Source: Gracilinanus agilis
Taxonomy: Eukaryota
Assembly (NCBI RefSeq): GCF_016433145.1
Contig: NC_058130.1
Location: 758,423,738-758,487,737, forward strand
Direction of reading: 5' to 3'
Length of the DNA stretch: 64,000 bases
In this document: positions 3,301 through 59,665 of the stretch, piece by piece
Numbering within the stretch: the stretch's first letter is position 1
How the letters are laid out: every line of letters starts with the position of its first letter
Made by a program: the position numbers and the translations under genes
The notes under the pieces: generated by a model
Databases searched by the model: none
Seen by the model: only the letters and a program-made list of their open reading frames with translations
What the model was told of the DNA's origin: nothing

Positions 3301-6300
3301 TTCAGCTGCTCATTGAGTTTGGCGTCCACGTCGAGGCGGATCAGCACGGGCTCCGTGAGGCCTGGGGGGGACAGAGCGGCGCTGAGGACGGCTCACCCCC
3401 AGCGCGCCCCCCACCCCCAAGGGAGGGCCCCGCCGAGGACGAGGGCGGCTCACCGGCGCGGGCGAACTCCACGAGAAGCTTGGGCAGCGTGGCGGAGAAG
3501 AGCACCGTCTGGTGGTCCTCGGGGAGGCGCCCCATGATCTCCTGCAGCTGCTCCGCAAAGCCCATCTCAAACAGCCTGGGGAGGGGCAGGGAGGTGGGGG
3601 CCGGCCCAGGGGGTCACAGACACGAGCTATGACCACCCTCATTTTTACAAATGAGGAAACTGAGGCTAATAGGTCAGTGCTTTGTCCTGGGCCACACAGT
3701 TGGGGTGAAGGGTCTGAGGCAGGATTCGAACTCCAGCCTTCCCAACAGCGGGTCAGGCGTCCTTAGCCTCGCTGTCCTGGGCTGCCTCATTATGAACAGG
3801 CACCGTCCCTGCCCGGCCCTCCCCACTATGCAGGGGCGACCCCGAAGGGAGCGAGGTGGGATGGGGGCCTCGAGGGCCGGGCAGGGGAGCCCCCCGCCAG
3901 CCCCTCACCTGTCTGCCTCATCGAACACGGCGTACTGCACGCTCTGCAGCTTCAGGTTCATCTCCACGGCCACGTGCATCAGGCGCCCGGGGGTGGCGAT
4001 GATTCTGCAGAGACGGCCCCCTCTGTCACCCCGGCTGCCCTTCCCCGGCCCCCGCCCTCCCCAGCACTCCCCCTCCCTCAAGCTCGGGGAGGGACCCAAA
4101 GGCAGCCTCCCCCAGACTCACATATCGGGGTTCTCATGCAGCGCCGCAAACTGGTCCTCCATCCTGTCAAAGAGAAGACAAAGCGCCTGTGTCGGGCCGC
4201 CCCCCCCGCCCTGCGCTTGTTTCTAACTCGGGTCCTCTGACTCTCCTGCGCCGCTGCGGCTGGACTCAGAATCAGGAAGGCCTGCCCGGCCCACGGCGGC
4301 CGCCTCCTCGTCCCTACTCGTTCCTTTATTTTTCCAGGGACGCGAGAAACAACGCCTGACGATTGTTTCTGGCCTCTCAGGCTGCTCATCTCTAAAGCTC
4401 AGCACCGCCACCTGCTCGCTCCAGAAGCACCAGAGCGGCGCCGGCCCGACCCCTTGGACGGGAGAGAAGCAAAGGCAGGACCAGGCCTGGTGGCGGCTGG
4501 ACAGGCCGCGGCTCTCCTGATCCTGGAGCGGGGCAGGGAGGGGACGAGGCCTTCTGAAGATGAGGAGGCTGAGAAAATCCAACGAGCGGGGACTTGGGGC
4601 TGATGGACCCAAAGGGAAGGAGCCACTTGATGCTCTCAGGGGCAAAGAAGAGGATAACCAAGAGGGCATGTGTGAGGGAGCCTCGGAAACAAAGACTACC
4701 CCAAAGGCACGGGGGGCATTTGTAAAGAGGGGGGCTACAGCTAATGGGGAGACAGCCTAATGTCATCTGAAGAACCCCAAGTTCCTGGATGCAATAAGGC
4801 ATAGCAGGAAAAAAGAACGAGCCCAGAACGGGCTCCGATCTGCTACTTATTTTAGAACAACGTGGGCTGCTGGACTTGACTCACTGGCTGAACACGAGCA
4901 AATTGCTAGAGGTCTCTAGGACTCAGTTTCCCCCTCTGTAAGAAAGAGGATCCTAGCCCTGCCTCCCTGCCTGTCCCACAAAAGTACTGAGGATCCAGGG
5001 AGATCACGGACATAAAATCCTTTGGCTTCCCAGGTGTGGGAGCCCCTTCCACCAACACCCAGAGATGGCAGCCTATCTGTTAAGCTCCGACCGTGCGGTC
5101 AGTGTGGCCTGGGCTTCCCCTGGCAGAGATGGCATTTGAACCTAAGCCTTCCGGCACCGGACCTGCTGGATCACAGGCGTCTCATAAAGAAGAGTCCCCA
5201 GGGAGGGGCCCACCACACAGGCACCCAGAAAGCAGTCCCGTCTTGAAGGAGGGCCAGTCAGCTTTGCTGGACTGTGGCTCCTTTTTACTCTTTTGTGCCA
5301 AAGGAGGAGGAGAAGCTACGCTGGCACGAACGCAGGGACGTCCTGGGAAACGAAGACCACTAGCGCAACCCAGTCAGTGACAAGACACGAGACAGGAGAA
5401 GCTGGCACGGACGCGGGCACTGCCGTTGTGGGACTGCTGTTGGGGCAGGAGGGGAGGGAGGGGGTCTGAAGCACTTACTTGTCTCCCCCAAGGATCAGGG
5501 CCGTCTTCAGGCCAGTGAACTTGCCCAGCTGTGGAGCAAAGGAGGCAGAAGGTGACGCCAGAGAAAGCTCCAAAGATTCTGCCCTTTACTCTGAGTCTGC
5601 CAGAGGACGCTCATTCCCCCTTCCAGAGTTCAGGAGTTTATTTTTTATGTTGATAATTGGGCATCACAATAAATCTGAATTATGCAAATCCAACTTTATA
5701 TAAAGGATTCTCAAAGAACTCTGCACACACCCCAAGGCACCCACTAGCCTTTTTGTACAGTGCTCCCTCCCAGGGAAACCAGAATGGACGTGGAGAGACC
5801 TCTGCGTGCCCACATGCCCAGCTCCCACGTGTCTGTCTTTTGTCTGTCTTGCCAGGTACCACACCTGGCCCCAGCCCCTGCCTGCCCCCCATCAGTTCTT
5901 CCTCTCAGCTCTAGCCAGGCTTCCACATGACTGCCCGGGCCCTGCCTGCTCCTCCTGCTCTGGCTTCTCTGTCCTGAGCCCTGACATGTCCTGTATTCCA
6001 TGGTGGCCCCTGGGCCTCACAGGCACACAGCCCCCAGCCTCCAGCGCACATGGCCCCTGTCTCCTGCCCTCCTTCCCTCACATCTGCGGGCAAATTCACA
6101 AGATATAAAAATCTCTTTGCAGGTCTACAGAATGGCCTCTTAGGGAGAAGTGAGGGTCACTGGTCTCCTACATGCTGTTTTATGCCTTTAAAGGGGTCAG
6201 GACAAAGAAGAGACCCCCCACACCTGGCTTACCTCTTTGGTGAACTTCATTGTCTGCAGGGCCAGCTCCCGGGTGGGTGAGAGGATGAGGGCACGGGCAC

Positions 6301-10960: not shown

Positions 10961-12224
10961 TCTCTGGAGGGCTCTAGTGCGTTCGTCGCCCTGTGCCCCG
11001 CCGTCGGGTCTTCCCAGAAGGAATCCAACTACCACGTCCTGAGGAAAATGGTAAAGCGCACCGGGTACCTTGTTAACAGTGTGGCCGACGTTTTTCGGGG
11101 TGCTCTCCAGATGGTTGGGAACCACCAACCCTGCTTCCTCCTGTCCCTCCCAGGTAAGCGCCCCGGCGGAGGGGGGGCTGCAGGCTGCCCTGTACAAGGC
11201 CTGGCACGAAGTGCATGCTTGAGGGAGGGGTGAGACCCTCGGAAGAAAGGGTGGGAGGGGCGCGGCCTGGACCCTGCCACGGGAACCTGCAGACTTGGAG
11301 AAAAACTCTCTGTAATGGTTTGAGAGCGAGGCCCGGAGAGGGAGGCTGCAGAATGCCGCCCCACCCCCCACCCCCCACCCCCGCAGTGTGGGTCTGAAGG
11401 AGCGCTTGAACCAAGGTTCCTAGGTTCCCCGGCTTTAAGAGGGCCGCTATATCGGCCTTCTGCGGGTGGAGGAAAGTAAACGTGCCCTTTTTCCGTTGAT
11501 TTATTTATTTTTTAGATACAAAGTGGGTATAGGGATGGAAGGGAGGCGTTTGATTCTGATGCAGAAGGTAAGAGTTTAAAAAAATTACGTGGGGGAAAAG
11601 AAAGGAAGCCACCCCCAAAATAGGCTGCGCCTTCGATAGAGCAATGGATTTGAAGTCAGGACAAGCTGAGTTCGAATCCTACCAAAGACACTTTCTTTGT
11701 GACCTTAGGCAAATTACTTGACTCTCATTGCCTCGCCCTTACCTCTCTTCTGCCTAGGAACCAGTACAGTGTTGATCTAAGACAGGGAAGGTTAGGGATT
11801 AAGAAATAAAAGGCTTTGGCTTGAAGAGGAAGGGATTGGGGCCGGGTCACTGTGGTTTATAAGCAGAAATCTTAAAGATGCTGTGGGGGTGGGGCTGGGA
11901 AGGACACCCCTGCTGTATCCTGGGCTCCCTGCCTGGAGGGGAACCCCAGAGTAGCTGATTTCAAACCCCCAAATTGGGTCTGCACAAAGTGCTAGAGCCT
12001 GACCAGAATTTTCTTTGTTTCCTTGTTGGTTAGCAACTGGCCTTTTTTGTCTCTCTTCTGGCAGCTCATTATGAGCCAGGGGAGAGTCAGGCACTTCACA
12101 GAGGGCCTTGGAGATCCCCCAACTGCACCCAGTGTGAAAGGGGGAGGCTTAGAGGTTATTGACTGGATGCCATTGGGGGAGAAAACAGGATGAACCCAGA
12201 GGGCCTCTTTCTTATGATTTCAGA

Positions 12225-12571
12225 ATGAGCAACATCACGAAAGCCTCAGTGGAGCTCACCATCAATGGGATACAGGCCCTCCAGCTTCAACACAGAGGCC
12301 TGAGTGGCTACCGGGTCAAGTACAGCACATCATTCGTGGATGAAACTTTGTTTGGCAGGCCTTTGGGGGCTCGGCCAGACCCGCCGGAGTTTGACCCTCC
12401 CTGGGCAGAGAAGGCCAAGCCCAGGAAGGCAGTGCCATTAACCCTTAATAAAAAGGAAGTAAAATGGAACCCGGATTCATATCCCTGCAGAGGCAGCAGC
12501 AGTATTCCTCCTCCATCCACGGACAACAACTGCATCTCTCCTCCTACACCCGGGAAAAAAAATAAATACAG
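12225..12571 (+). CDS. RITA1: RITA1 first coding exon
   Basis: MSNITKASVELTINGIQALQLQHR...VDETLFG...PPEFDPPW...GKKNKYR|. Confidence 0.92.
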
Positions 12572-15548
12572 GTAATAAACAGAATCCCACAATGTCCCAC
12601 CAGAAAGGACCTTAGAGGTGCTGTAGTCCAATTCTTTCATTTTACAGATACGGAAAACAGAGGGTCAGACAAGAGTCATGGCTTGCCCAACGTCATATCA
12701 GTAGTTTGGTAAATGGGTCAGGTCCGCATTAAGTGCCTACTATGTGCTGGTCTCAGGAAGCCTGCACCCTCTGGAGGTGCTTGTTTTCCCATACACCATG
12801 CATATAGACTCCTTCAGGGCAGGGCATAGTTTTTTTTTTTGCCAATGCCTCACATGTACTTAATACATGCTACTGGATTTGTGTGGTGTGGTATATAGTT
12901 CCAGGGAATGTGATTAGGACCACTGAGTAGAAGTTCCAGAGACAGAAACTTGTTCAATGTAAGGAAGCATTTTCCAAAATCTAGAACCACCCAGTATTAG
13001 AAGGGGATTGTCTCTCCCAGCATTCCTCATCCTACAAGAATGTCAGCTGAACCTGGATAACCATGGATGAGAAGGGTAAATAAAAATCACTAGCAGATGA
13101 CTTTGAACTTTTCCCACTAGTGAAAAATGATGCTAAGACAAACTGAGACACAGTTATCTCCAGGGCAAGCTAAGTATATTAACAGTAATGCATAAAACTA
13201 TTAATAAAATGGGTCGCTAAAAAGCCAGAGATCTGAGCATGATCGGTTTATAACTTAGGCTAGCTTACTAACCAATAAATTGGGTCAATGACCAGAGACC
13301 TCCCAAGTGAGCACTGACAGGGACTTTTGAACCTAGATGTGTCTTCCTTCTGATTGGCCCAATAGAACATCATTTTGGGCCTCCCCTAGCAAAGGTCTGA
13401 CCATCTTGATTGGTAGATACTTTGATGAGGAAGAGAGTTGAGTTACCTCAGCTCCCTATTCCTCATTGGGAGATAGGAATAATCCTCAAATGATAGGCTC
13501 AGTCTCCACTGGGCAGAGTGGATTGGCCTTAAGAAATGGGTTTGCCAAAGAATGGAAGAATGGATTACAGAGTAATCATAATTAAATGATACAGAGTAAT
13601 AATCATTTCCCTCAAGCACATGTTGTCCCTTTTGATCCTCAACCCAGTGCCTAGAATGTAATAGGCACTTAATTAATGTTTGTTTTTGCTTAATTGAGCT
13701 AAATGTTAGGATTATCTCCATTTACAGATGAGGAATCAGGCTCTGCAATGGTGGATAATGTGTACCCATAATCACATATCTCCTAAGTGTCAAAGGTGGG
13801 ATTCTCTCTCTCCCTCTCCCCCCTCCCCCCCCCCCCACCCTATCCCTTCAAGCTCCTCAACCTTTTCTTTATCTATTCAATTATGGTCCCAGTCCAAATT
13901 CTGTCTTGTGAGAAAACTTTATTCATTGGAGGTTTTCTTATATTTTTGGAACCTCACCCTGCATGGCTGGGAAACTTCACCACCTGTACCTGCTGTTTGG
14001 AGATCTTAGCTAAGGACCTAGGTTATGGAAACCAGAAATGCAATCAGATCCCCAGATTAATGCAAGGAGTTTTCTCATACATCTCCAACAGCCCACTTCT
14101 CATCTCAAAACTAGACCCATCCTGATAAGACAGTTGTTTCCATGATCCTTTGATTAGTTCACAGACACTTGGGAGGACTAGGACACTCCTTTTTTGAAAT
14201 TTAGGGAAATGTACCTTGTTCACTCCCCCTCCCAATTTGGAGAGTCCCTAATCTCCAATTAGACATCTCGTTACCTATTGTTTATGGTTGCCTTTTAATT
14301 GACCTTATTGCATTGTTTTTAATATATTAAAAAATCTGCCTCTCCCTGTATTTGAGGTCCAGACCTAAGCTGGGGAAGAGGCCAGGCCCTGATTTGTTGG
14401 GCAGTTGGCACACATTAATAAATCAATATGCTCAGAAGATCAAATCACTCTTTCCTCGGTCATTTCATCTTTTGTTCATTATGCTATGCCACCTCCTTCT
14501 TCCCCCAGTATTAGACAACTCTCCAAGGTCCTTTCAAAAAATTTGGGGCATAGGTGGCAGAATTTGACTTAAAACACATCTCCTGAACTTTCCATTGGTC
14601 CATTGACAAACCAGTTGGCCATACTGGAAAGAAGTCTTTGGTTCCAGGGTCCCATGTCTGTTTTATTCATTCCCTTTGTGACTTCCATTCCTCGGGCCTC
14701 CATTTTATCATCTGTAAATTGATGCAGTTGACCTTCAAGGTCTCTTTCAGCTCTAGATCTGGGATCCTGTGATTCTTGAAGTCAGGACCCCAACAAGTTA
14801 GAAGGCCCCTCATCTATGAGAAAGCAGTATCTTTCCTTAGCCAGGGTGCCAGAATGGAAGTGAGCATCCTGTATCACTTTCTCTCTGATTTGGATACAAA
14901 CTCCTTTGGCAATTATTTTTTCCTGACTTTGTTTCTTCAGATATCTAGATGTTCTAGAAAAGGGCCAGACTGGGACCTGGGCTCCTATTGTTCTCACCTC
15001 GTTATTTCTTCTCCATCCTTTTCCATACTAGGCTTATCAGCCACAAGTCATCCTACTGTGACGAGACCCTCTTCGGCACACAAGAGAAGGGATCCCCCAG
15101 GAAGGTACCATGGATAAAGATGGAAGAGATTCCAAGACTCGAGCCCCTCTTCTGGACCCCACCATCAGTGCCCGGGAGTAGTTGCTCACCCCATCCTAAG
15201 GAGACCCCACTGTGGACCATTCGCTCCATGGTTTCCTCTGTGCCAAAGAACAGGAGCAAGTCAGACATTTGGCATAGGCCCTTGGAGGAGTTGGACTCTG
15301 TAGATCCCCTCCAGAAGGGGAGTTCCCAGTCACTCACCCACCTGAATGGCTCCCCTACAAGGCACTCCCTCACCACCAAAACCCCACACCAGGGTAGGCA
15401 GCGAGAAGCTTGGGTTCAGTCAGCCTTGGTGATTTTCCAGAGCCCACTGGCAACCCCCACCCCCAGGACTCGTTCTGTCAGCTTCTCAGAACCAGTTAGT
15501 CACCGGAAATATTTAGCCACCCCCAAGCCAAAGCCACCCTGGAAATGA
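12225..15548 (+). CDS. RITA1: RBPJ-interacting and tubulin-associated protein 1, 287 aa, 2 coding exons
   Basis: Exons 12225-12571 and 15032-15548 (864 nt; AG|gtaat ... actag|G). Two DETLFG repeats (SFVDETLFG, SYCDETLFG), basic GKKNKYR, C-terminal PKPKPPWK as in mammalian RITA; synteny fits. Confidence 0.94.
15032..15548 (+). CDS. RITA1: RITA1 last coding exon
   Basis: LISHKSSYCDETLFG...SLTHLN...PKPKPPWK*; TGA at 15546-15548. Confidence 0.94.
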
Positions 15549-18218: not shown

Positions 18219-21200
18219 CTAAAGGGAACCAGGTAGTTTGGGATCATTGAGGAAATCCTCTTCATATGGACACTGGGAAGGACATGGCGACATCCCTCCT
18301 AGACTAGTTAATTCTGCAAGTGCCCAAGAGTGTAAGAACTCACTATCTGACAAAAACTCCTGGGAAAAATGGAAAGGAGTCTGGCAGAAACTGGATACAG
18401 ACCAACATCTCATACTGTATACCAAGATAAAGTTAAAATGGGTACCTAAAATTAGACAAAGAGTGCTGCCATAAACAAATCAGGGGATGTGGGATAGCTT
18501 CTCTCTCAGATCTATGGATAAGAGAAGAATTTATGACCAAACAAGAAATAGAGAACATTACATAATGTAAAATGGATCATTTTGATTGTATTACATTTAA
18601 AAGATTTTGCACACGCAAAACCAATGCAGCCACAGTTAAAAGGAAATCAGATACATATAAAACCCAGAGGAATTGCATGTTGGCTATGGTGAGGCAGATG
18701 GAGGGGGTATGGGGGGAGGGAAAGAACATGAATCGTGTAACCATGGGAAAATATTCTAAAACAATTTTTTAAATTAAAAAGTAAAAAAAAAAAAGAAATC
18801 AGAAAGTTGGAGTGGGGGGCACAAATTTTATAGGAAGCTTTTCTGATAAAGGTCTCATTTTTCAAATATATAGCAAACAGAGTCAAATTTATAAGAATAG
18901 AAATCATTCTCCAATTGCTAAATAAAGGATATAAACAGGCAGTTTTTAGATAATGAGATCAAAGTTACCTATAATTACATTAAAAAATGTTCTAAACCAC
19001 TATTAATTAGATAAATGGAAATTAAAACAACTCTGAGATATCATCTCATACCTATCAGACTGACTAATATGACAAAAAATAAAGGAAAATGACATGTTGA
19101 AGAGGATGTGGGAAAATTGGAACACTAATATACTGTTAAGTTGTGAACTGATCCAACTATTTTAGAGAACAATTTGAAATTTCACACAATGTTGTGAAAC
19201 TGTACATACCCTCTGATTCAGTAATACCACTAAGTCTGTATTCCAAGGAGATTATTTATTTATTTTTAAGCTGTTTTTTTTTTTTGAAATTTTATTTTTT
19301 AGAAAATTTTTCCATGGTTACATGATTCGTGTTCTTACTCTCCCCTCAACCCCCCCCCAGCCCCACCCATAGCCAATGTGCATTTCCACTGGCTTCTTCA
19401 TGTGTCATTCATTGATCAAGACCTATTTCCATATTATTGATAGTTGCATTGGTGTGGTAGTTTCGAGTTTACTTCCCAAATCATGTCCGCATCAACCCAT
19501 GTGTTTAAGCAGTTCTTTTTCTTCTTTGTTTCNNNNNNNNNNNNNNNNNNNNNNNNNNNNNNNNNNNNNNNNNNNNNNNNNNNNNNNNNNNNNNNNNNNN
19601 NNNNNNNNNNNNNNNNNNNNNNNNNNNNNNNNNNNNNNNNNNNNNNNNNNNNNNNNNNNNNNNNNNNNNNNNNNNNNNNNNNNNNNNNNNNNNNNNNNNN
19701 NNNNNNNNNNNNNNNNNNNNNNNNNNNNNNNNNNNNNNNNNNNNNNNNNNNAAATATTGATAGCAGCTTTTTTGTGTGTTGTGTGTGGTGGCAAAGAACT
19801 GGGAATTGAAGGGATGCTACCCATCAGTTGGGGAATGGCTGGACAAGTTGAGATATATGTTTGTGATGTTATTCTGCTATAAGAAATGACAAGCAGGACT
19901 ATTTCAGAAAAACCTAGAAAGACTCATATGAACTGATGCAAAGTGAAGTGAGCAGAATCAGAACAACAGTGTACACAGTAATAGAAATATTATATGATGA
20001 TCGACTGTGAATGATTTGGCTATTCTCATCCAATGATCTAACAGTGATGGGCAAACTGCGGCCTGGGGGCCAAATGTGGCCCCCTGAAATGTTCCATCCT
20101 GCCTGGCGACATTATTCCTAATCTGACAAATACAATGAGCAGGATACAATACAATGAAACTTTGAAAGAGTTGCCTTAGAAACAGACCAACAGATGAGCA
20201 TTTCCTTTCCTTTGGCCCCTCTTTAAAAAGTTTGCCCATCACTGGTCTAAGACAATTCCAAAGGACTTCTGAAGGATGAAAATGTTATCTGCCTCCAGTG
20301 AGAACTGAGAGTCTGATTGAAGATTGAAGCATATTATTTTTTATTTTATTTTTTCATGGTTTTTTTTCTAGGGGTAGAGGATGTCTTTATTTTCTTTTAC
20401 AACCTAATATGGAAATATGTTTTGCACGACTGCACATGTATAACCTCTATCAAATTTTTGCTGTCTGACGGAGGGGGTAAGGGAAGGAGGGAGAAAATAT
20501 GGGACTCAAAATTAAAAAAAAAAACAACTGTTAAGAGAGCAGCTAAGTGTCTCAGTGGATTGAGAGCCATACCCAGAGACAGAGGGGTCAGATACTTCCT
20601 AGCAGTATGACCCTGGTTAAGTCACTTAATCCCCATTATCTAGCCCTTATAGCTCTTCTACCTTACAACCTATCTGCAGAACTGATTCTAAAGTAAGGAC
20701 TTTAAAAAATGTTAACAATTATTTTTACATGTAATTGGGAAAAAATATTCTTTTAAAATAGAATAAGTGAAAAAAGAAAGAAAATAGAATAAGGAAAATA
20801 ATCTGGGGTCTTTGGAATAATTACATGAAAGGAAAGGAAAGGGACCCTTACCTGCTTTTCTCCCATCTCCGTATCATATTTTTGGATCCAGTTCTCTATT
20901 TCTGTCTCTAGTTTATATTTCTTCTAGAAAAACAAAACATAAAAAGGCAGAAATTATTTAACCATGTTGGCAAAGTAATCAACAGAACCCTGAAGACCCG
21001 GCTCCTCATCATTCAACCAAGGCCTGGTTGCATTCATTGGGTGTCTGCTAAGAGCCCAGGAGAGTCTCCTGGTTCGGATTTCTGTTCACGCCTGAAAGCC
21101 GGCTTTGCTAACACCAGTTAAGGCACGCAGCTACAGAAACGACCCGGCTTGGGGAGGGGAGCTCGATTCTTATCAGTATCGGACTGGCAGGGAAAAGGGC

Positions 21201-22921
21201 CTTTGTGTCCATGGGAGGTAGGAAAGGTCTTACAGAGTCTGCTGGCCAGAACACACCAACAGGGGCTTTCCATGCCCTGCTGTCGAGGTCCTGCATCTTA
21301 CCTGAGTGGCTTGGATTGTCCTCTTCTCCCCTCCCTCATCCTTGCGACAGAGTTCTTCACAGATAAGATGGGGCATCTCCAACTACCTGCCCCCTCGCGA
21401 TTGCTCTCTCTCTTTTTAAACCCTCACCTTCTCTCTTAGAATCAATACTGGATACTGGCTCTGAGGCAGAGGAGCAGCGAGGGCTAGGCAATGGGGGTGA
21501 CGTGACTCGCCCAGGGTCATTCCACTAGAAGTGTCTATGTGAGGTCAGATAGGAACCCAGGACCTCCCGTGTCCAGGCCTGGTGCTGTGTTCATGGAGCC
21601 ATCTCCTTGCCCCCCTCCCATACCTTTCTGAGCCCCTGTTCGCTCTCCCGGTTCTCCATAGTGAGATTATGGTACTGGGTCTTGAGCATGAGGATATCCT
21701 GTTGGATCTTTGTGATGCGGATCTGAGAGGCCCTCAGCTCGGCCTTCTGCTGCTTCTTGGCCTCTTGCTTGGTGCGCAGGAGGTGGCTTTCAGAGAACTT
21801 GAGCACCTGGTGCAGGTGGCTTTTAAGTTCCCGGATCACGAAGTTTTCCTTCTCTACCTGAGGCAGAGAAAGAAGAGAAGAGCCCATGAGCCCCGGAGTA
21901 GCTGGAAATCGGCCTCTCCCCAGGAAGGCTGGGAAGTCTCTCCGGTGAAAGCCTTGGGCCAAGAGGGAATTCCACTGTGGGTTTCAGGAGCAGTTAGGTG
22001 GCCCAGTGGGTTGAGAATCAAGCCTAGAAATGGGAGGTCCTGGGTTCAAATGTCATTAAAAAAAAAATCCATTCCCTGCATCTAACCTCATTGCCATCAG
22101 CAGCCATTGCTCCTTTCATTTCCAGGGCATTCCCAACGCTGCCCAGGCAGGCCCTGAGCCATCCCCACAGGCTCTCGGGCTCCCCCCAGGCCTACCTGGG
22201 TATCCCTGGATTTGATGGTGCTAGAGAGCTGTGACTCGAGATCCTGGATCATCTCGGTGTTCTTCTTGTCCCTGAGAATGATTTCGTTCATGAATTCGAC
22301 CTTCTCCTTCTCCTCCATGGGGCTGGTGAGGAGCTTCTCGAACACAAAGTTTCTGAATTCAATCAGGCTTTGGAGAAAAACATCGGCCTCCTCGCTTCTC
22401 CCCACGATGTGGGTCCGAAAGATTTCCCCGGCTGGGATGTTGATCAGGAAGATCCTCAGGGTGTTGCGGGCAGAGCTCTTAACCTCGTCTTTGAGGAGTG
22501 TGATCCTCTGTTTGTGCTCCTCCACTTGGAGCTGCAGCTGATCTTCGGCCATCACTTCAGCCTCTTCCTCCTCTTCTCTGACCAGGTTCACCTGCTCCAG
22601 GAGGCTGTTGCACAGGTCCTCGTGTTCTCGGACGGCGTTTATGGTGTCGTCATCCCACAGGCCCTCCAGACTCTCGGGGTTGTACGCGGCTGCCGACAGC
22701 AGCGTGATCAGCTCTACCTTGTGGATGGTTTCATCCAGAACAGCAATGATCCTCTTGGTCTCGATGGTGGTGAGTTTGGTCCGAGCTGGGTCCAGTTGGC
22801 TGGTGTTTCCGCATGAGAGCAAGGCTTTTTTGGCACCCAGGCCCAAGCCTACCCTGGGCCTGTTACCAGTGGAAATCTCAGAGCCCTGGTAGAGGGGAGC
22901 CACAAGCACGTCCATCGCCAT
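17937..22921 (-). CDS. IQCD: IQ motif-containing D / dynein regulatory complex subunit 10, 437 aa
   Basis: Exons 22921-22196, 21857-21624, 20923-20852, 18218-17937 (1314 nt, all phase 0, GT-AG). Kozak ccaccATGG; [25 protein letters not shown]; IQ motif [15 protein letters not shown]. Confidence 0.96.
19533..19751. other. Assembly gap (219 N)
   Basis: Run of N, inside the last IQCD intron; no coding exon appears to be missing. Confidence 1.
20042..20244. mobile_element. hAT (Charlie-type) MITE with perfect 16-bp TIRs
   Basis: CAGTGATGGGCAAACT ... AGTTTGCCCATCACTG; flanks atctaa / gtctaaga resemble a TCTA-type hAT target site. Confidence 0.9.
20852..20923 (-). CDS. IQCD: IQCD 72-nt coding exon
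   Basis: Not in the ORF track; read by hand as [24 protein letters not shown]; ttctag| and |gtaagg. Confidence 0.95.
21415..21615 (-). mobile_element. SINE1_Mdo-like
   Basis: Consensus match; head ends about 9 nt from an IQCD donor site. Confidence 0.8.
21624..21857 (-). CDS. IQCD: IQCD second coding exon
   Basis: [23 protein letters not shown]...EQGLRK; 234 nt. Confidence 0.96.
22196..22921 (-). CDS. IQCD: IQCD first coding exon
   Basis: 242 codons; acceptor ctctag| places the exon start at 22942; donor CAG|gtaggc. Confidence 0.96.
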
Positions 22922-31960: not shown

Positions 31961-32523
31961 ATACATACTTATTGAAGGAAAGACTGATTTTAGGGAATGA
32001 CCCAGTAGGTGGAGTTGGAGTCTGCATCATTTCAAATCCCTCACATCAAAAATAAATTCAGTGGATGATTACAGCAAATTAATGGGCCTGGGGGCCAGAA
32101 GACTACTAGATCAGTCCCTGATTTGCCCTTTATCTGGCCCCGTGAGTCTGGATCTCTTTGTGCCTCGGTTTCCCTATTTGCATACTGAAAGGATTGGATC
32201 TGAGACCCCTTCTAACTCATATATTCATATTTGCTTCTAAGTTCACTTCCTGGCTCTGCCTTCTGGGGTCTCATTTCCTCGTTTGTAAAGCCAGGGGGTT
32301 AGATCAGATGTCCTCTGGGGTCCCTTCCAACTGCGAACGCGATAAGAAGGGCTCATTAGCTTAGTCCTCCAGGAGACCCAGAGGCAGAGCGATGGACGCC
32401 CGTGACAGTTAAGTCGAACAAAAGTTCTTCCCTATCCACTTTCTCTTCCAAAGAGCAGAATTTCTTCTCTGTTGTTCTGTCACCCAGTTCGTTCCACTAC
32501 CACCCCCAATCATCTACACTTAC

Positions 32524-32650
32524 CGGCCCTCGCAGCTTTGGGGCTTCCCTCTCCTTCAACCACTCCTTCCTAAGTCTCCAGCGTGGCGGCGTTGCTAAGC
32601 TACGGATAAACATTAAAACCAGACCGACCACATCCGGGGCGTGACTTTGT
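32524..32650 (-). other. IQCD: Putative non-coding exon 1 of IQCD
   Basis: Strong minus-strand donor CCG|GTAAGT at 32524/32523 at the edge of the CpG island; the 5' end is a guess. Confidence 0.5.
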
Positions 32651-33500
32651 GGTTCAGATTGACTTGACCAGTCACCATTCACTATCCGGCATTTTCCTGT
32701 TAAGAGTCGAGCCAATCGAGAGAGCCGTGAGTGCGACAGTTCCAAGACTATTCTACTAGCCAATAGAAAAAGCCTAGACAGATGCTCGTTAGGCTGAGAA
32801 GGGAAGACTCGCGGAGAAGGCGGGAGAAGGAAAAGGGGAGGAGATTTGCACGAGGCATACAAGAGGCGGGGAAAAGAGCAGATTACCCAATCAGAAACCC
32901 GCAAAGTCTCCGGAAGAAAGAAGAGGGAAAGCCACACCTTCAGGCTGGAAGGGGCGGGGAAAGAGGAAGGGCGTTTACTGGAACCAATCATAGGTCCCTA
33001 AGGCAGACGTTGCAAACAATAAAAATTTGGAGCCTTAGGTATCATCCCCTTGAGGAGGGAGAGGGCGGGGAAAATAGAAAGGTCCAATGAGAGCACTTTA
33101 TGGTGCAGTCACGTAACCAACGAGTCGCAGGGAAGGGGGAGGAGGATCATTTCGGTCCCTGGAGAACGGAAGGGAAGAGAAGAAGAGGTGGGTGAAGTGG
33201 GCGGGGAAAATGGAAGGACGTTTCATCCGACCAATCAGAGAGCTGCTGTTTCCGCCCGGACAGTCAATGGCCTCCGGGAAGGAGGCGGAGCTACGACTGA
33301 GACTGGAGGTGTTGGGGGGGAGGTGGAGAAGGGGACGGATGAAAATCGGCGCAGCTGTGGCGGTGGCGGCCCCGGCGTTTTCCTTCTTTGGGGCGGCAGG
33401 TTCAGGTCCTGCCGCTGCTCCGCGATTCTCTGGCGGCGCCTCGCGGGAGGTTCGATTCGAAGCCCAGTTCGAGGTCGCTGCTTGCAGGGGCGTCTCCTGT
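32580..33500. promoter_or_regulatory. Bidirectional CpG-island promoter, IQCD/TPCN1
   Basis: CpG-rich. CCAAT at 32712, 32760, 32887, 32984, 33084, 33231; GGCGGGGAAA four times; X-box-like GTTGCTAAGCTAC at 32591. Confidence 0.85.
33280..33498 (+). other. TPCN1: Putative non-coding exon 1 of TPCN1
   Basis: CpG-rich segment after the CCAAT cluster, ending at a possible donor CCT|gtaagg (33498/33499); both boundaries uncertain. Confidence 0.4.
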
Positions 33501-36159: not shown

Positions 36160-36335
36160 AGCTAGTTAGAAGAGCAAATAGAGAGCCAGGCCCAGAGTCA
36201 GAAGGATTTGGGTTCAAATGTGGCCTCAGACACTTCCTAGCTATGTGACTCTGGATAAGTCACTTAACACTTGATTGCCTAACCCTTATGGTTCTTCTGT
36301 CTTAGAATTGATCCTAAGACAGACGGTAAGAGTTT
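36160..36335 (+). mobile_element. SINE1_Mdo-like, just upstream of TPCN1 exon 2
   Basis: Consensus match. Confidence 0.85.
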
Positions 36336-36400
36336 ATACATATATAATCTCCAGTCTTGTTAGAGTTCTCTGCATTTTCTCTTTCTTATAAAACTAGAAG

Positions 36401-36502
36401 ATGCCCCTGATGGCAGAGGCTTTGAGACGTATCTCCAGGGCAGCAGTTTTGAAGAGGAAACTGAGCAAGAAACCCTTTGAAGCTCTCAGTGCTACATCCT
36501 GA
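36401..36502 (+). CDS. Upstream ORF in TPCN1 exon 2 (33 aa; translation unproven)
   Basis: ATG 36401 to TGA 36500-36502: MPLMAEALRRISRAAVLKRKLSKKPFEALSATS; stops 19 nt before the main ATG. Confidence 0.55.
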   Translation: MPLMAEALRRISRAAVLKRKLSKKPFEALSATS

Positions 36503-36521
36503 AACTGCCTGAAGGGAGGCC

Positions 36522-36633
36522 ATGGATGGGAGCATGGATGATGATGTCCCCTTCATCTTGACCCTGGACGACAGCGGGAGTACCCCACTGGCACCCTCTA
36601 ACCACCTGGGTCAGGAGGATTTGCCCAACGAAA
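36522..36633 (+). CDS. TPCN1: Two-pore channel 1, first coding exon (exon starts at 36398 or 36401)
   Basis: MDGSMDDDVPFILTLDDSGSTPLAPSNHLGQEDLPNE resembles recalled human MAVSLDDDVPLILTLDEGGSAPLAPSNGLGQEELP; Kozak gccATGG; donor A|gtaag; 112 coding nt. Confidence 0.95.
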
Positions 36634-41352: not shown

Positions 41353-43574
41353 CCCTCACAAGTTCTTGCCAGGGCCTGGTTCTGTGTCCTGAGAGTACAG
41401 CTTTAGTGTGAAATTCAGCATTGTCCACAAGGAATCTTGGCTAACCTCGGGCAGAGAACATGGGCCATTTCGGGGCTTCAGGCCGCCTCTTGCTGTGGCC
41501 TCCACCAGCCTGCCCGATAGTCCCAGGCTGCCACGCTTGGGAAGGAGCCAGGAAATGGCTTTCCCTCTGTCTTTCAACCAGCCCTTTATATTGCCTTCCA
41601 TGAAAGTGGCCTTCCAGTATCAGAAAAGGAATGAGGCAACAAGGATCCCTGAGACTGTTTTCCCATCTGGCCAGGGAACAGGACAGGAAGGCTGGCCGGG
41701 TCTGTCTAGAGGCAGGGATGGATCATTCCTCCTTCTGTATTGCTCGAAGGCTTTGGAAATGCTTTCCTCTCAGCACCCCTGTTGGGTAGCTTGGTAGATG
41801 CATTGCTCCCTTCGTATGGATGAGAAAACTGAGGTCTAGAAATGTAAAGTCTGTCCATATCCAGGTGCACGTAAGTAGAAAGTGTTAGGGTTGGCATTTG
41901 AACGCAGGTCAAATAGTCAAGGTTGCTGTGCCCAGCACTAAGAAGGCCCCCGTTGCCTCTCCAGTGCTCAGCAGGGCAGGGATGGTTACTGCTGGGACTT
42001 TCCCCCTCCAGTGTGTACCTTGGGGGACCTCCCCCAGGCGTGAGATAGTGGCCCCAGAACCCGCATGACCCTGGGCAGTGGCAGGGCTCCGGGCCCAGGC
42101 TCACGACGCAGACCAGATGCCACTTTTCTTTGGCCCCAGCTGGTGCCTGCAGCCAAGACAGGAATAAGAGGCGGCCCTGGCAGCCGGAGCCCCGATTGCA
42201 GTCAGATTTCTGCTGCCTCCCAGGGTGCGTGGCCAGTGGGCTCCGTCACTGGTGCTCCCGTGGCTTTTAGGGCCTCGCCAGGGTGGAGCACTCGTGTTGT
42301 CAGGCTAGCTGCGGCACCGATTAAAATGAGCGAGCACCAGGCATGCTGGGCCCAAGCCTCATAACGGAGCCTCGGAGCCTCTCGAGTTCCCCGGCCCTCG
42401 GTGTCTCATGGTGGGAGCCTGTCTGTTGCCACGGGCCCCCCTACCTCGAAATGCTATTTCTCCCTTCCGAAGGCGGGAAGCAGCCCCATCTCAAATGCGG
42501 CGGCAGCAGCTGTGCAGTGGTTGGAGTGCCGCCGTTTCCCCATTGCCTTAGGGGGGTCTAAGTTCACATTTGCTCAGAGAGGGATTCATGAGCCAGAACA
42601 GTCAGCGTCTACGCCTTCAAGTCAGTAAAGGGAGATGAAGAGGATTTGATGGGGCTCAGCAGTACCTCTCTGGCAGCTTCTGCTTGGAGGATGTGCTCCC
42701 AGGGTCGGACTCGAGGCTGGGCCCACTTGCCTGATCGGCTTCCATTGGGGCTCTCCTGTTGGAAGGGGAAGTGACCTGTGAAGGTGGAGACCCTCCCTGC
42801 CCAAGGGGAGCCACCCTGTGCTCTGCCCTTGTGGCATTAGGGGCTGGAAGCACCCAAGAAGAGAGATCCAGGATCTCTCAGCCCTGCCATTGTGTGCTAT
42901 GGGGACCCTCTCGGCAGGAAAGCTTCTTCTCCCTGGTCTTTGCTGTGCTCCTGGGAATCGCTGAATCTTGGAGTTGGAAGGGGCTCAGCAAGCATTGGCC
43001 TAGACCTCCTGTGATGGGCATCCCCCTTGCCTGAGACCGACTATTCCATTGTGGGGATGAGCTAACCGTGAGGAGCCAGCTCAGTGAAGGCAGAGGCTTA
43101 GGCCTTTGTTAGCATCCGGGGAGAGAGATTCCAAAATGAGGAACGATATAGAAAACCAACTTCCCCTTTCTGGCTCGTGTGACCTCTCTTGGCCTGGAAG
43201 TGCAGGTCCTCAGGGAGCTCCCGAGAGAGGACGCTTCCTCTTCTTGTCGGGCCCTTCTCCCAAGTCTGCCCCGGCCACTGGCGGAAACGAGAGCTCCTGG
43301 GCAGCTCCTGAGACTGTCATCCTGCGCCAGGCGGTGAGCCTGAGGCTTGGGCAGTGGTTTCTGTGGGCGATTCTTCCTCATAATCCCTATGAGGTAAAGG
43401 AACAGGATTTCTTTCCTCATTTTCTGATGGTGGGAAAGAGGACCCAGAGAGGGACCATTATCTGCCCCACAGTGACAGCGATGTCTTTCTTCTTGGCGGC
43501 AGAGAGTAATGTTGGTGAGTGCTGCTACCGGAGGAGAAGGACATCCGAGAAGCATTTTCTAAAATACACAAGAG

Positions 43575-44210
43575 GGGGCAGCTGCATGGCTCAGTGGATA
43601 GAACTCTGGGCCTAGAGACAGGAGATCCTGAATTCAAATGTGGTCTCAGACACTTCCTAGCTGGGTGACCTTGGGCAAGTCACTTAATACTGTTGGCCTC
43701 TGTCTCCTCATCTATAAATTGAGCTGGAGAAGGAAATGTCAAACCACCCCAGTATTTTTATCAAGAAAACCCCAATGGGGATGTAGACTCTAAACAAGCA
43801 CCCCAGTGCGATTATCAGTAATATAGAAATAGGTCTGGATCAATGACACATGTAAAACTTAGTGGACTTGCTTGTTGGCTATGGGGTGGGGGGTTGGGGA
43901 GAAGAACATGAATCTTGTAACCATGGAAAAATATTCTTAATTAATCAATTAAATAAAATAAAAAAAAGAAAACCCCAATGGGGGTCATGAAAAAGAAATC
44001 AGAGGGACAGGTGGGTTGAGAGTCAGACCTAGAGACGGGAGGTCCTGGGTTCAAATCCAGCCTCAGACACTTCCCAGCTGTGTGACCCTGGACAAGTCAC
44101 TTGGCCCCCATTGCCCACCCTTACCACTCTTTCACCTGGGAGCCAATGCACAGAAGTTAAGGGTTTAAGAAAAGAGAAGAAATCAGACATGACTAAACCA
44201 TTGAACAATG
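43575..44210 (+). mobile_element. MAR1-type SINE carrying nested L1-tail and SINE1 insertions
   Basis: L1 tail 43781-43965 with 18-bp TSD aagaaaaccccaatgggg; SINE1 44004-44176 with 11-bp TSD aagaaatcaga. Confidence 0.88.
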
Positions 44211-56169: not shown

Positions 56170-56297
56170 ATGGAGGCGACTATATTATCAGTGACTTGAG
56201 GGCAGCCAGCCCAGACTCAGGGGATGGGAGCTCCCCCTTGAGTCCCACCCGACCCAGCTGGGAAATGAATTATCAAGAGGCAGCAATCTACCTCCAG
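56170..56297 (+). CDS. TPCN1: Two-pore channel 1, second coding exon
   Basis: ttgcag|AT GGA GGC...NGGDY...SWEMNYQEAAIYLQ|gtgagt; phase 1 in, phase 0 out; WEMNYQEAAIYLQ is diagnostic of TPC1. Confidence 0.96.
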
Positions 56298-59360: not shown

Positions 59361-59428
59361 GAAGACTTTGGGGGTGAGGGTGGCGAGTGGTGCCATAAGC
59401 ACACTTGTGCTTTAAAAAATCATTTTGG

Positions 59429-59665
59429 TGGGGGCAGCTGGCTCAGTGGATTGAGAGTCAGGCCTAGAGACGGGAGGTCCTGGGTTCGAATCCGGCCTCA
59501 GACACTTCCCAGCTGTGTGACCCTGGGCAAGTCACTTGACCCCCATTGCCTACCCTTACCACTCTTCTGCCTTGGAACCAATACACAGAAGTTAAGGGTT
59601 TAAAATAAAAAAATAAAATAAAAATAAAAATAAAAAATAAAAATAAAATAAAATAAAATAAAAAT
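59429..59665 (+). mobile_element. Young SINE1_Mdo-like element with TSD
   Basis: 15-bp TSD aaaaaatcattttgg at 59414-59428 and 59666-59680; (TAAAA)n tail. Confidence 0.95.

Follow-up and report, generated by a model that had tools for sequence, protein, structure and literature searches.

A conserved upstream open reading frame in the TPCN1 leader of Gracilinanus agilis, probably a translational brake as old as the marsupial-placental ancestor

In Gracilinanus agilis, exon 2 of TPCN1 carries an upstream open reading frame (uORF) of 33 codons ahead of the TPC1 start codon, and an orthologous uORF was found in each of the ten placental mammals whose leaders were compared with it. We consider it likely that this is a conserved uORF of the TPCN1 5′ leader, dating at least to the common ancestor of marsupials and placentals, which represses TPC1 synthesis in cis and is bypassed by leaky scanning. 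Judged from the sequences, its role is most likely that of an old translational brake on TPC1. Three observations carry this reading: the start codons, stop codon and length of the uORF have been kept across the sample, the spacing to the main start codon has hardly changed, and purifying selection is confined to the uORF frame.

The DNA analyzed was a 64,000-nucleotide stretch of the Gracilinanus agilis genome (contig NC_058130.1; hereafter the window), and the features of interest are listed in Table 1. The gene at this locus is TPCN1, the first coding exon of which encodes a DDDVP-type TPC1 N-terminus. This exon (exon 2) ends at position 36633, a small correction to the original prediction made from the letters of the window, and its coding part is 70-75% identical to that of eutherians. 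Upstream of TPCN1 lie a minus-strand Helicase_C exon (DDX54-like, 2364-2924) and a RITA-family gene (RITA1) with two plus-strand exons (12159-12572 and 14988-15545). This arrangement is the same as in human synteny, and the region was thus identified as the RITA1/DDX54 neighborhood of TPCN1. The CpG island ahead of TPCN1 is possibly shared with the upstream minus-strand gene. Long coiled-coil-like ORFs on the minus strand (21591-22921) gave no Pfam match; they are placed like IQCD/DRC10, which sits beside TPCN1 in a non-mammalian tetrapod locus (L010). The window contains a single run of N (19533-19751, 219 nt). A SINE-like repeat recurs across the introns (36160-36290, 43519-43665, 59361-59600 and many others); its translations recur as well, one containing FKCGLRHFLA and another being a second recurrent 23-letter protein string, and one copy stops roughly 100 nt short of the exon 2 acceptor.

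Table 1. Features of the TPCN1 locus in the window, and positions of the orthologous uORFs in eutherian sequences.
Feature	Position	Strand	Remarks
CpG island, likely TPCN1 promoter region	32501..33500	.	GC 0.52-0.59, CpG observed/expected 0.70-0.88 (500-nt bins)
Non-coding exon 1, predicted by homology	33339..33498	+	ends at donor cct/gtaagg; inside CpG island
Tandem NAGNAG acceptor (tag/aag) of exon 2	36395..36400	+	direct reading
uORF, 33 codons plus TGA	36401..36502	+	direct reading; orthologous ORFs in ten eutherians
Second in-frame ATG, codon 4, G at +4	36410..36412	+	invariant in 11/11 species
Spacer from uORF stop to main ATG, 19 nt	36503..36521	+	17-20 nt across all species
TPC1 N-terminus, coding part of exon 2	36522..36633	+	donor GT 36634-5
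TPCN1 exon 3	56170..56297	+	encodes WEMNYQEAAIYLQ; search anchor used in place of exon 2
uORF orthologues, same length and register	L001:159-260, L002:438-539, L004:1724-1825, L005:189-290, L007:4879-4980, L009:161-262, L011:1379-1480, L012:334-435, L013:1070-1171, L014:1382-1483
Vole uORF	L003:5097-5192		31 codons; 6-nt in-frame loss

The uORF was originally predicted as a 33-codon frame opening at ATG 36401, with a further in-frame ATG at 36410, and all of its letters were confirmed, including the TGA at 36500-36502. These are the only two ATGs in the exon 2 leader, and both lie in the same frame. The uORF terminates upstream of the main start codon, with the last base of its TGA at 36502 and the main ATG, in the context gccATGg, at 36522, and the two reading frames do not overlap. 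It had also been claimed that the main frame is closed upstream of its ATG; reading backwards from 36522 to the exon edge, five TGAs were indeed encountered.

Orthologous leaders were collected through an ORF search with exon 3, followed by searches with proteins of other species and by contig look-ups from which human- or ape-like proteins were left out. The exon 3 search led to the 99-aa product of a Logan RNA contig from a bat-like eutherian (L001). Together with the window, the final sample contained 11 species: the bat, mouse (genomic sequence L007 and RNA contigs L008 and L009), bank vole (L003), and the eutherians represented by L002, L004, L005/L006 and L011 to L014, with no human locus among them. 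The window is the one marsupial, and monotremes, afrotherians and xenarthrans are not represented; the exon 3 ORF, used in a word search, returned no marsupial relative, and the best 120 matches of the full-length search were all eutherian. When these leaders were aligned, the uORF frame was intact in all 11 species, with both ATGs kept and the TGA in the same alignment column, just as had been predicted. Eutherian leaders without the ATGs, or with frame-breaking indels or stops, would have spoken against the prediction; none was seen among the ten. Apart from that of the vole, whose 6-nt in-frame loss is the sole uORF indel in the alignment, every uORF is 33 codons long, and the orthologues span several mammalian orders (a marsupial, rodents, bats and other placentals). 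In the spacer, the window has a 1-nt deletion immediately 3′ of the TGA relative to eutherians. Between the window and eutherians the uORF is 52-64% identical with no gaps, whereas intronic sequence from -150 to -21 is about 50% identical with 20-32 gap columns. The window diverges from the ten placentals by 33-38%, in keeping with a non-placental mammal, and the start, stop and length of the uORF were kept despite about 40% nucleotide divergence. The proposed origin of the uORF in the therian ancestor is therefore supported by the window and ten placentals, the marsupial side being the single sequence of the window. In the one non-mammalian tetrapod TPCN1 locus examined (L010), in which the transcription start was not located, no homologous uORF was seen. 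An ATG ORF of 33 codons does occur there, at about 5761-5862 and about 250 nt upstream of the start codon; it is without sequence similarity and is probably a coincidence.

The position of the uORF within the spliced leader was also determined. In the window, a non-coding exon 1 was assigned by its alignment to mouse exon 1 (L007:1645-1796) and to the bat mRNA (L001:1-155); it has the exon core GGCGCAGCTG in common with them, and its donor, ...T/GTAAGGA, is like that of mouse. Exon 1 is predicted to start at or near an ATG (33339) whose counterpart stands right at the 5′ end in the RNA contigs of bat and mouse; a scan of exon 1 found no other ATG. At exon 2, the predicted NAGNAG acceptor was borne out by its letters, ctAG/aAG/ATG, with the two AGs at 36396-7 and 36399-400. 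The acceptor motif, CTAGAAGATG or CAGAAGATG, is present in 10/10 eutherian sequences. In the bat mRNA (L001) the proximal AG is used, and the GC-rich exon 1 is joined to AAGATG (equivalent to window position 36398). In mouse RNA contigs the acceptor is a CAG lying 8 nt before the ancestral tAG/AAG, so that ACCTTAG is added ahead of AAGATG; there the NAGNAG letters persist but fall inside the exon (L007:4860-4880; L008:2570-2590; L009:150-165). The uORF is thus within the spliced leader in the bat (L001) and mouse (L008, L009) RNA contigs, and by homology of exon 1 and of the acceptor the same would hold for the window. In the bat and mouse RNAs, the uORF AUG is the first AUG after the cap-proximal one at the 5′ end of the contig. 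Moreover, the first uORF AUG (uAUG1) has A at -3 and C at +4 in all 11 species, and the main AUG has a purine at -3 and G at +4, likewise in all 11.

The ATG at 33339 opens a 53-codon frame across the predicted exon 1. When the junction with the proximal acceptor was read by hand, the last T of exon 1 and the first AA of exon 2 were seen to form a TAA one nucleotide before uAUG1 (TAAGATG), identically in the bat mRNA (L001:1-161). A conserved exon 1 uORF ending at this junction TAA was rejected, given that the mouse exon 1 ATG frame reaches a stop after 12 codons and that the ATG is among the very first letters, at the 5′ end, in both RNA contigs; from that position, it may coincide with the transcription start and be unused.

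Selection on the uORF was assessed by neutral simulation and by codon models. For the simulation, an HKY model was run 200,000 times on a tree with branch lengths fitted to the uORF region itself. In 10 of the 200,000 runs, every tip retained the ATG and a frame that stayed open until a stop at codon 34 (P = 5e-5), a value that is conservative because indels were ignored. Codon models (IQ-TREE, GY+F1X4, fixed tree, 32 codons, 11 species) provided the dN/dS check that had been suggested along with the prediction. Omega was 0.52 in the uORF frame (2dlnL 9.9 against omega = 1, p about 0.002) and exceeded 1 in the other two, at 1.34 in the frame of the TPC1 N-terminal extension described below and 1.48 in the remaining third frame, neither of them significant. 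In seven non-rodent boreoeutherians, omega of the uORF frame was as low as 0.225 (2dlnL 19.75), and the other frames were at least 1.6. For the opossum (the window), rodents and L002, omega of the uORF was 0.73, not significantly below 1; this split into slow and fast lineages was chosen after the data had been seen. In close laurasiatherian-like pairs, changes clustered at third codon positions of the uORF, equivalent to first positions in the extension frame. Met1, Met4, Ala28 and the C-terminal Ser of the uORF peptide are invariant across the 11 species. Taken together, these data show that purifying selection is confined to the uORF frame and that constraint on the peptide is heterogeneous between lineages; in the opossum and rodents, only the architecture of the ORF is demonstrably kept.

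The leaky-scanning part of our interpretation rests on the established scanning model. The uORF would start 3 nt into exon 2, its AUG being the first after the cap-proximal AUG in the mature mRNA. Scanning ribosomes would initiate at uAUG1, which has A at -3, or nine nucleotides further on at uAUG2 as a back-up, and would translate 33 codons. They would then terminate 17-20 nt before the TPC1 AUG, presumably too close for efficient re-initiation. With so short a distance between stop and AUG, the uORF is expected to divert part of the ribosome flow, and most TPC1 would come from ribosomes that scan past both uAUGs without initiating. We infer splicing and translation in Gracilinanus agilis, as well as the repressive effect and the leaky-scanning route. 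That the two in-frame AUGs, the length and the spacer are all kept argues for selection on translation of the uORF frame, and the constrained peptide sequence in non-rodent placentals suggests that the nascent peptide may contribute there.

This arrangement resembles several known systems to different degrees. As in ordinary leaders bypassed by leaky scanning, there is one uORF that stays clear of the main frame, the context of its uAUG is moderately good and that of the main AUG strong, and stop and AUG lie close together. To our knowledge, conservation of length and register over about 160 million years is not found in most repressive leaky-scanning uORFs, and the TPCN1 uORF differs from them in having kept both. 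Control under stress, as suggested in the original prediction, would recall the ATF4/GCN4-type leaders, in which uORFs likewise control genes linked to nutrient or lysosome biology. Those leaders, however, need a permissive first uORF and a second, inhibitory or overlapping one, whereas TPCN1 has one non-overlapping uORF. An ATF4-type arrangement was rejected on these grounds, and also because a spacer of 17-20 nt is too short for regulated re-initiation. Conserved-peptide uORFs (CPuORFs) of animals, such as those of TMEM184C and MAPK6, are described by Takahashi 2020 (PMC7530721) as short AUG uORFs found across mammalian orders with Ka/Ks below 1, several of which repress the main ORF in a sequence-dependent manner. 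The TPCN1 uORF is like the CPuORFs so described in its conservation across orders and its Ka/Ks below 1, but its peptide constraint depends on the lineage; TPCN1 does not appear in the main text of that paper.

Other explanations for the uORF were weighed against this evidence. uORFs are common in mammalian leaders, and an ORF that arose by chance in Gracilinanus agilis, neither orthologous nor functional, would be in keeping with the finding that roughly two in three shuffled leaders contain a closed ATG ORF of whatever length. When a length of at least 33 codons was required, however, just 1.3% of the shuffles (124-nt leader, dinucleotides preserved) had a closed ATG ORF, as did 1 of 154 equally long pieces of intron 2. 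By itself the ORF is merely mildly unusual; it is the cross-species comparison that lifts it above chance. Its positional orthology in 11/11 species has the low probability under neutrality given above, and chance would need a wrong alignment register, a possibility countered by an alignment that has no gaps and is anchored at both the acceptor and the coding sequence; we give chance hardly any credence. Constraint of a non-coding kind (exonic splicing signals, RNA structure or a protein-binding site), with the open frame being incidental, was considered as well. The leader is overall better conserved than the intron, and the first ATG is 3 nt from the splice acceptor, so that part of its conservation could serve splicing. 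Yet the constraint is frame-specific, with omega below 1 in the uORF frame only, and start, stop and length persist through the nucleotide divergence noted above. A conserved RNA structure was rejected, since the alifold energy of -10.6 compared with -12.0 +/- 2.8 for column shuffles (z = +0.49). A purely non-coding origin of the conservation is accordingly very improbable. The frame may, alternatively, have been kept for a functional 33-residue peptide, acting either through nascent-chain arrest (of the signal-responsive CPuORF type) or elsewhere as a free micropeptide. The low omega in the seven non-rodent placentals, the concentration of synonymous-type changes at uORF third positions and the four invariant residues are all in line with such a product, and the catalogued human peptide is, by eye, identical to that of L014 at 28/33 residues. 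Against it, the identity of the opossum or rodent peptides to those of other placentals is just 36-48%, in the lineages where omega is not significantly below 1, and net charge and character differ, the opossum peptide being strongly basic and the eutherian consensus not. No known arrest motif is visible in the uORF peptide, the partition behind the low omega is post hoc, and for the human peptide the published PhyloCSF is negative and the number of mass spectrometry (MS) studies detecting it is zero. Opossum and rodent divergence, negative PhyloCSF and the absence from MS data argue against a universally conserved peptide function, and we regard the peptide as an unlikely, though not negligible, reason for conservation of the frame. 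A more elaborate version, in which a functional 33-residue product (a micropeptide, or an arrest peptide tied to, for example, nutrient or lysosomal state) is combined with tuning of uAUG1 use by the NAGNAG acceptor through a change of the -3 base from A to C, strikes us as rather doubtful.

The leader is also read in a further frame, and the uORF might owe its conservation to an N-terminal extension of TPC1, that of the long isoform. The original prediction had pointed to such a link in human, and annotated primate proteins do read EDASNGG...HILR through the leader in this extension frame; extended isoforms (EDASNGG...HILR...-MAVS) are annotated in bat and other gene models, too. The main frame is open across the whole leader in the bat, L002, vole, L004 and L005, and eutherian spacer indels are multiples of three. 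The extension frame is nevertheless broken by stops in 6/11 species (opossum, mouse, L011, L012, L013 and L014) and cannot therefore account for the conservation. The opossum frame is, in addition, shifted by 1 nt relative to ATG 36522, so that the leader of the window is neither open nor in register, and the omega values, which reach about 2.0 (2.05) in the slow group, reveal no purifying selection in the extension frame. With the proximal acceptor, moreover, the hand-read TAA at the junction of exons 1 and 2 falls in the extension frame in both the bat and the window, and the primate extension begins in a separate upstream exon, the translation of which looks repeat-derived. We find it scarcely credible that the extension underlies the conservation. 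The proteins P0039, P0190 and P0222, from eutherian gene models or transcripts, run from exon 1 into the leader as ...GAY/ASNGG, which fits the distal AAG acceptor; splicing there would eliminate the junction TAA and allow an N-terminal extension starting at the exon 1 ATG. Primate long isoforms (P0188, P0198, P0203 and others) have MESCY.AQAGLELLGSS.SPTLTSQSA... as their first coding exon, which we take to resemble an exonized Alu-type repeat. If it is Alu-like, the long isoform would be a primate novelty. The annotated human long isoform probably does not reflect a conserved protein extension; a read-through of the uORF region restricted to certain lineages is more likely.

The human orthologue of the uORF is catalogued as the GENCODE Ribo-seq ORF c12riboseqorf140, a TPCN1 uORF of 33 aa and 102 nt (Sandmann 2023, PMC10032668, Table S1). 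It shares with the uORF of the window the gene, the position in the leader and the 33 codons, and the human ORF starts with MPLM and ends with Ser and the stop. The catalogue classes it as 'primatomorpha - young' with origin 'unknown', and gives 0 MS studies and PhyloCSF values of -31.19 for primates and -375.74 for mammals (PMC10032668). In that work, 'young' denotes a BLASTp-based score outside primates below the cut-off, and ORF structure was traced only within primatomorpha (PMC10032668). The listing places translation in human cells on record and makes no claim of deep conservation of the ORF architecture; in the present study, by comparison, the ORF structure was traced to a marsupial and frame-specific purifying selection was measured. 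Within the papers searched, there was nothing on translational control of TPC1 and no text discussing a TPCN1 uORF. With human translation already known, the advance made here is modest but real: conservation that is therian-deep, constraint that is frame-specific, and the recognition that the extension frame is not the conserved one.

The feature described here is the marsupial counterpart of a conserved uORF whose human orthologue is catalogued as translated, and its translation in Gracilinanus agilis is predicted from that relationship. The endolysosomal cation channel TPC1 has been studied in connection with NAADP and PI(3,5)P2 signaling, trafficking and virus entry, and a leader element whose start, stop, length and spacing were kept throughout therian history offers a concrete handle on TPC1 dosage. 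More generally, the label "young", given to a Ribo-seq ORF by amino-acid similarity, can stand on an architecture with an age of roughly 160 million years, and this gap between the label and the age of the ORF bears on how catalogues of Ribo-seq ORFs are read.
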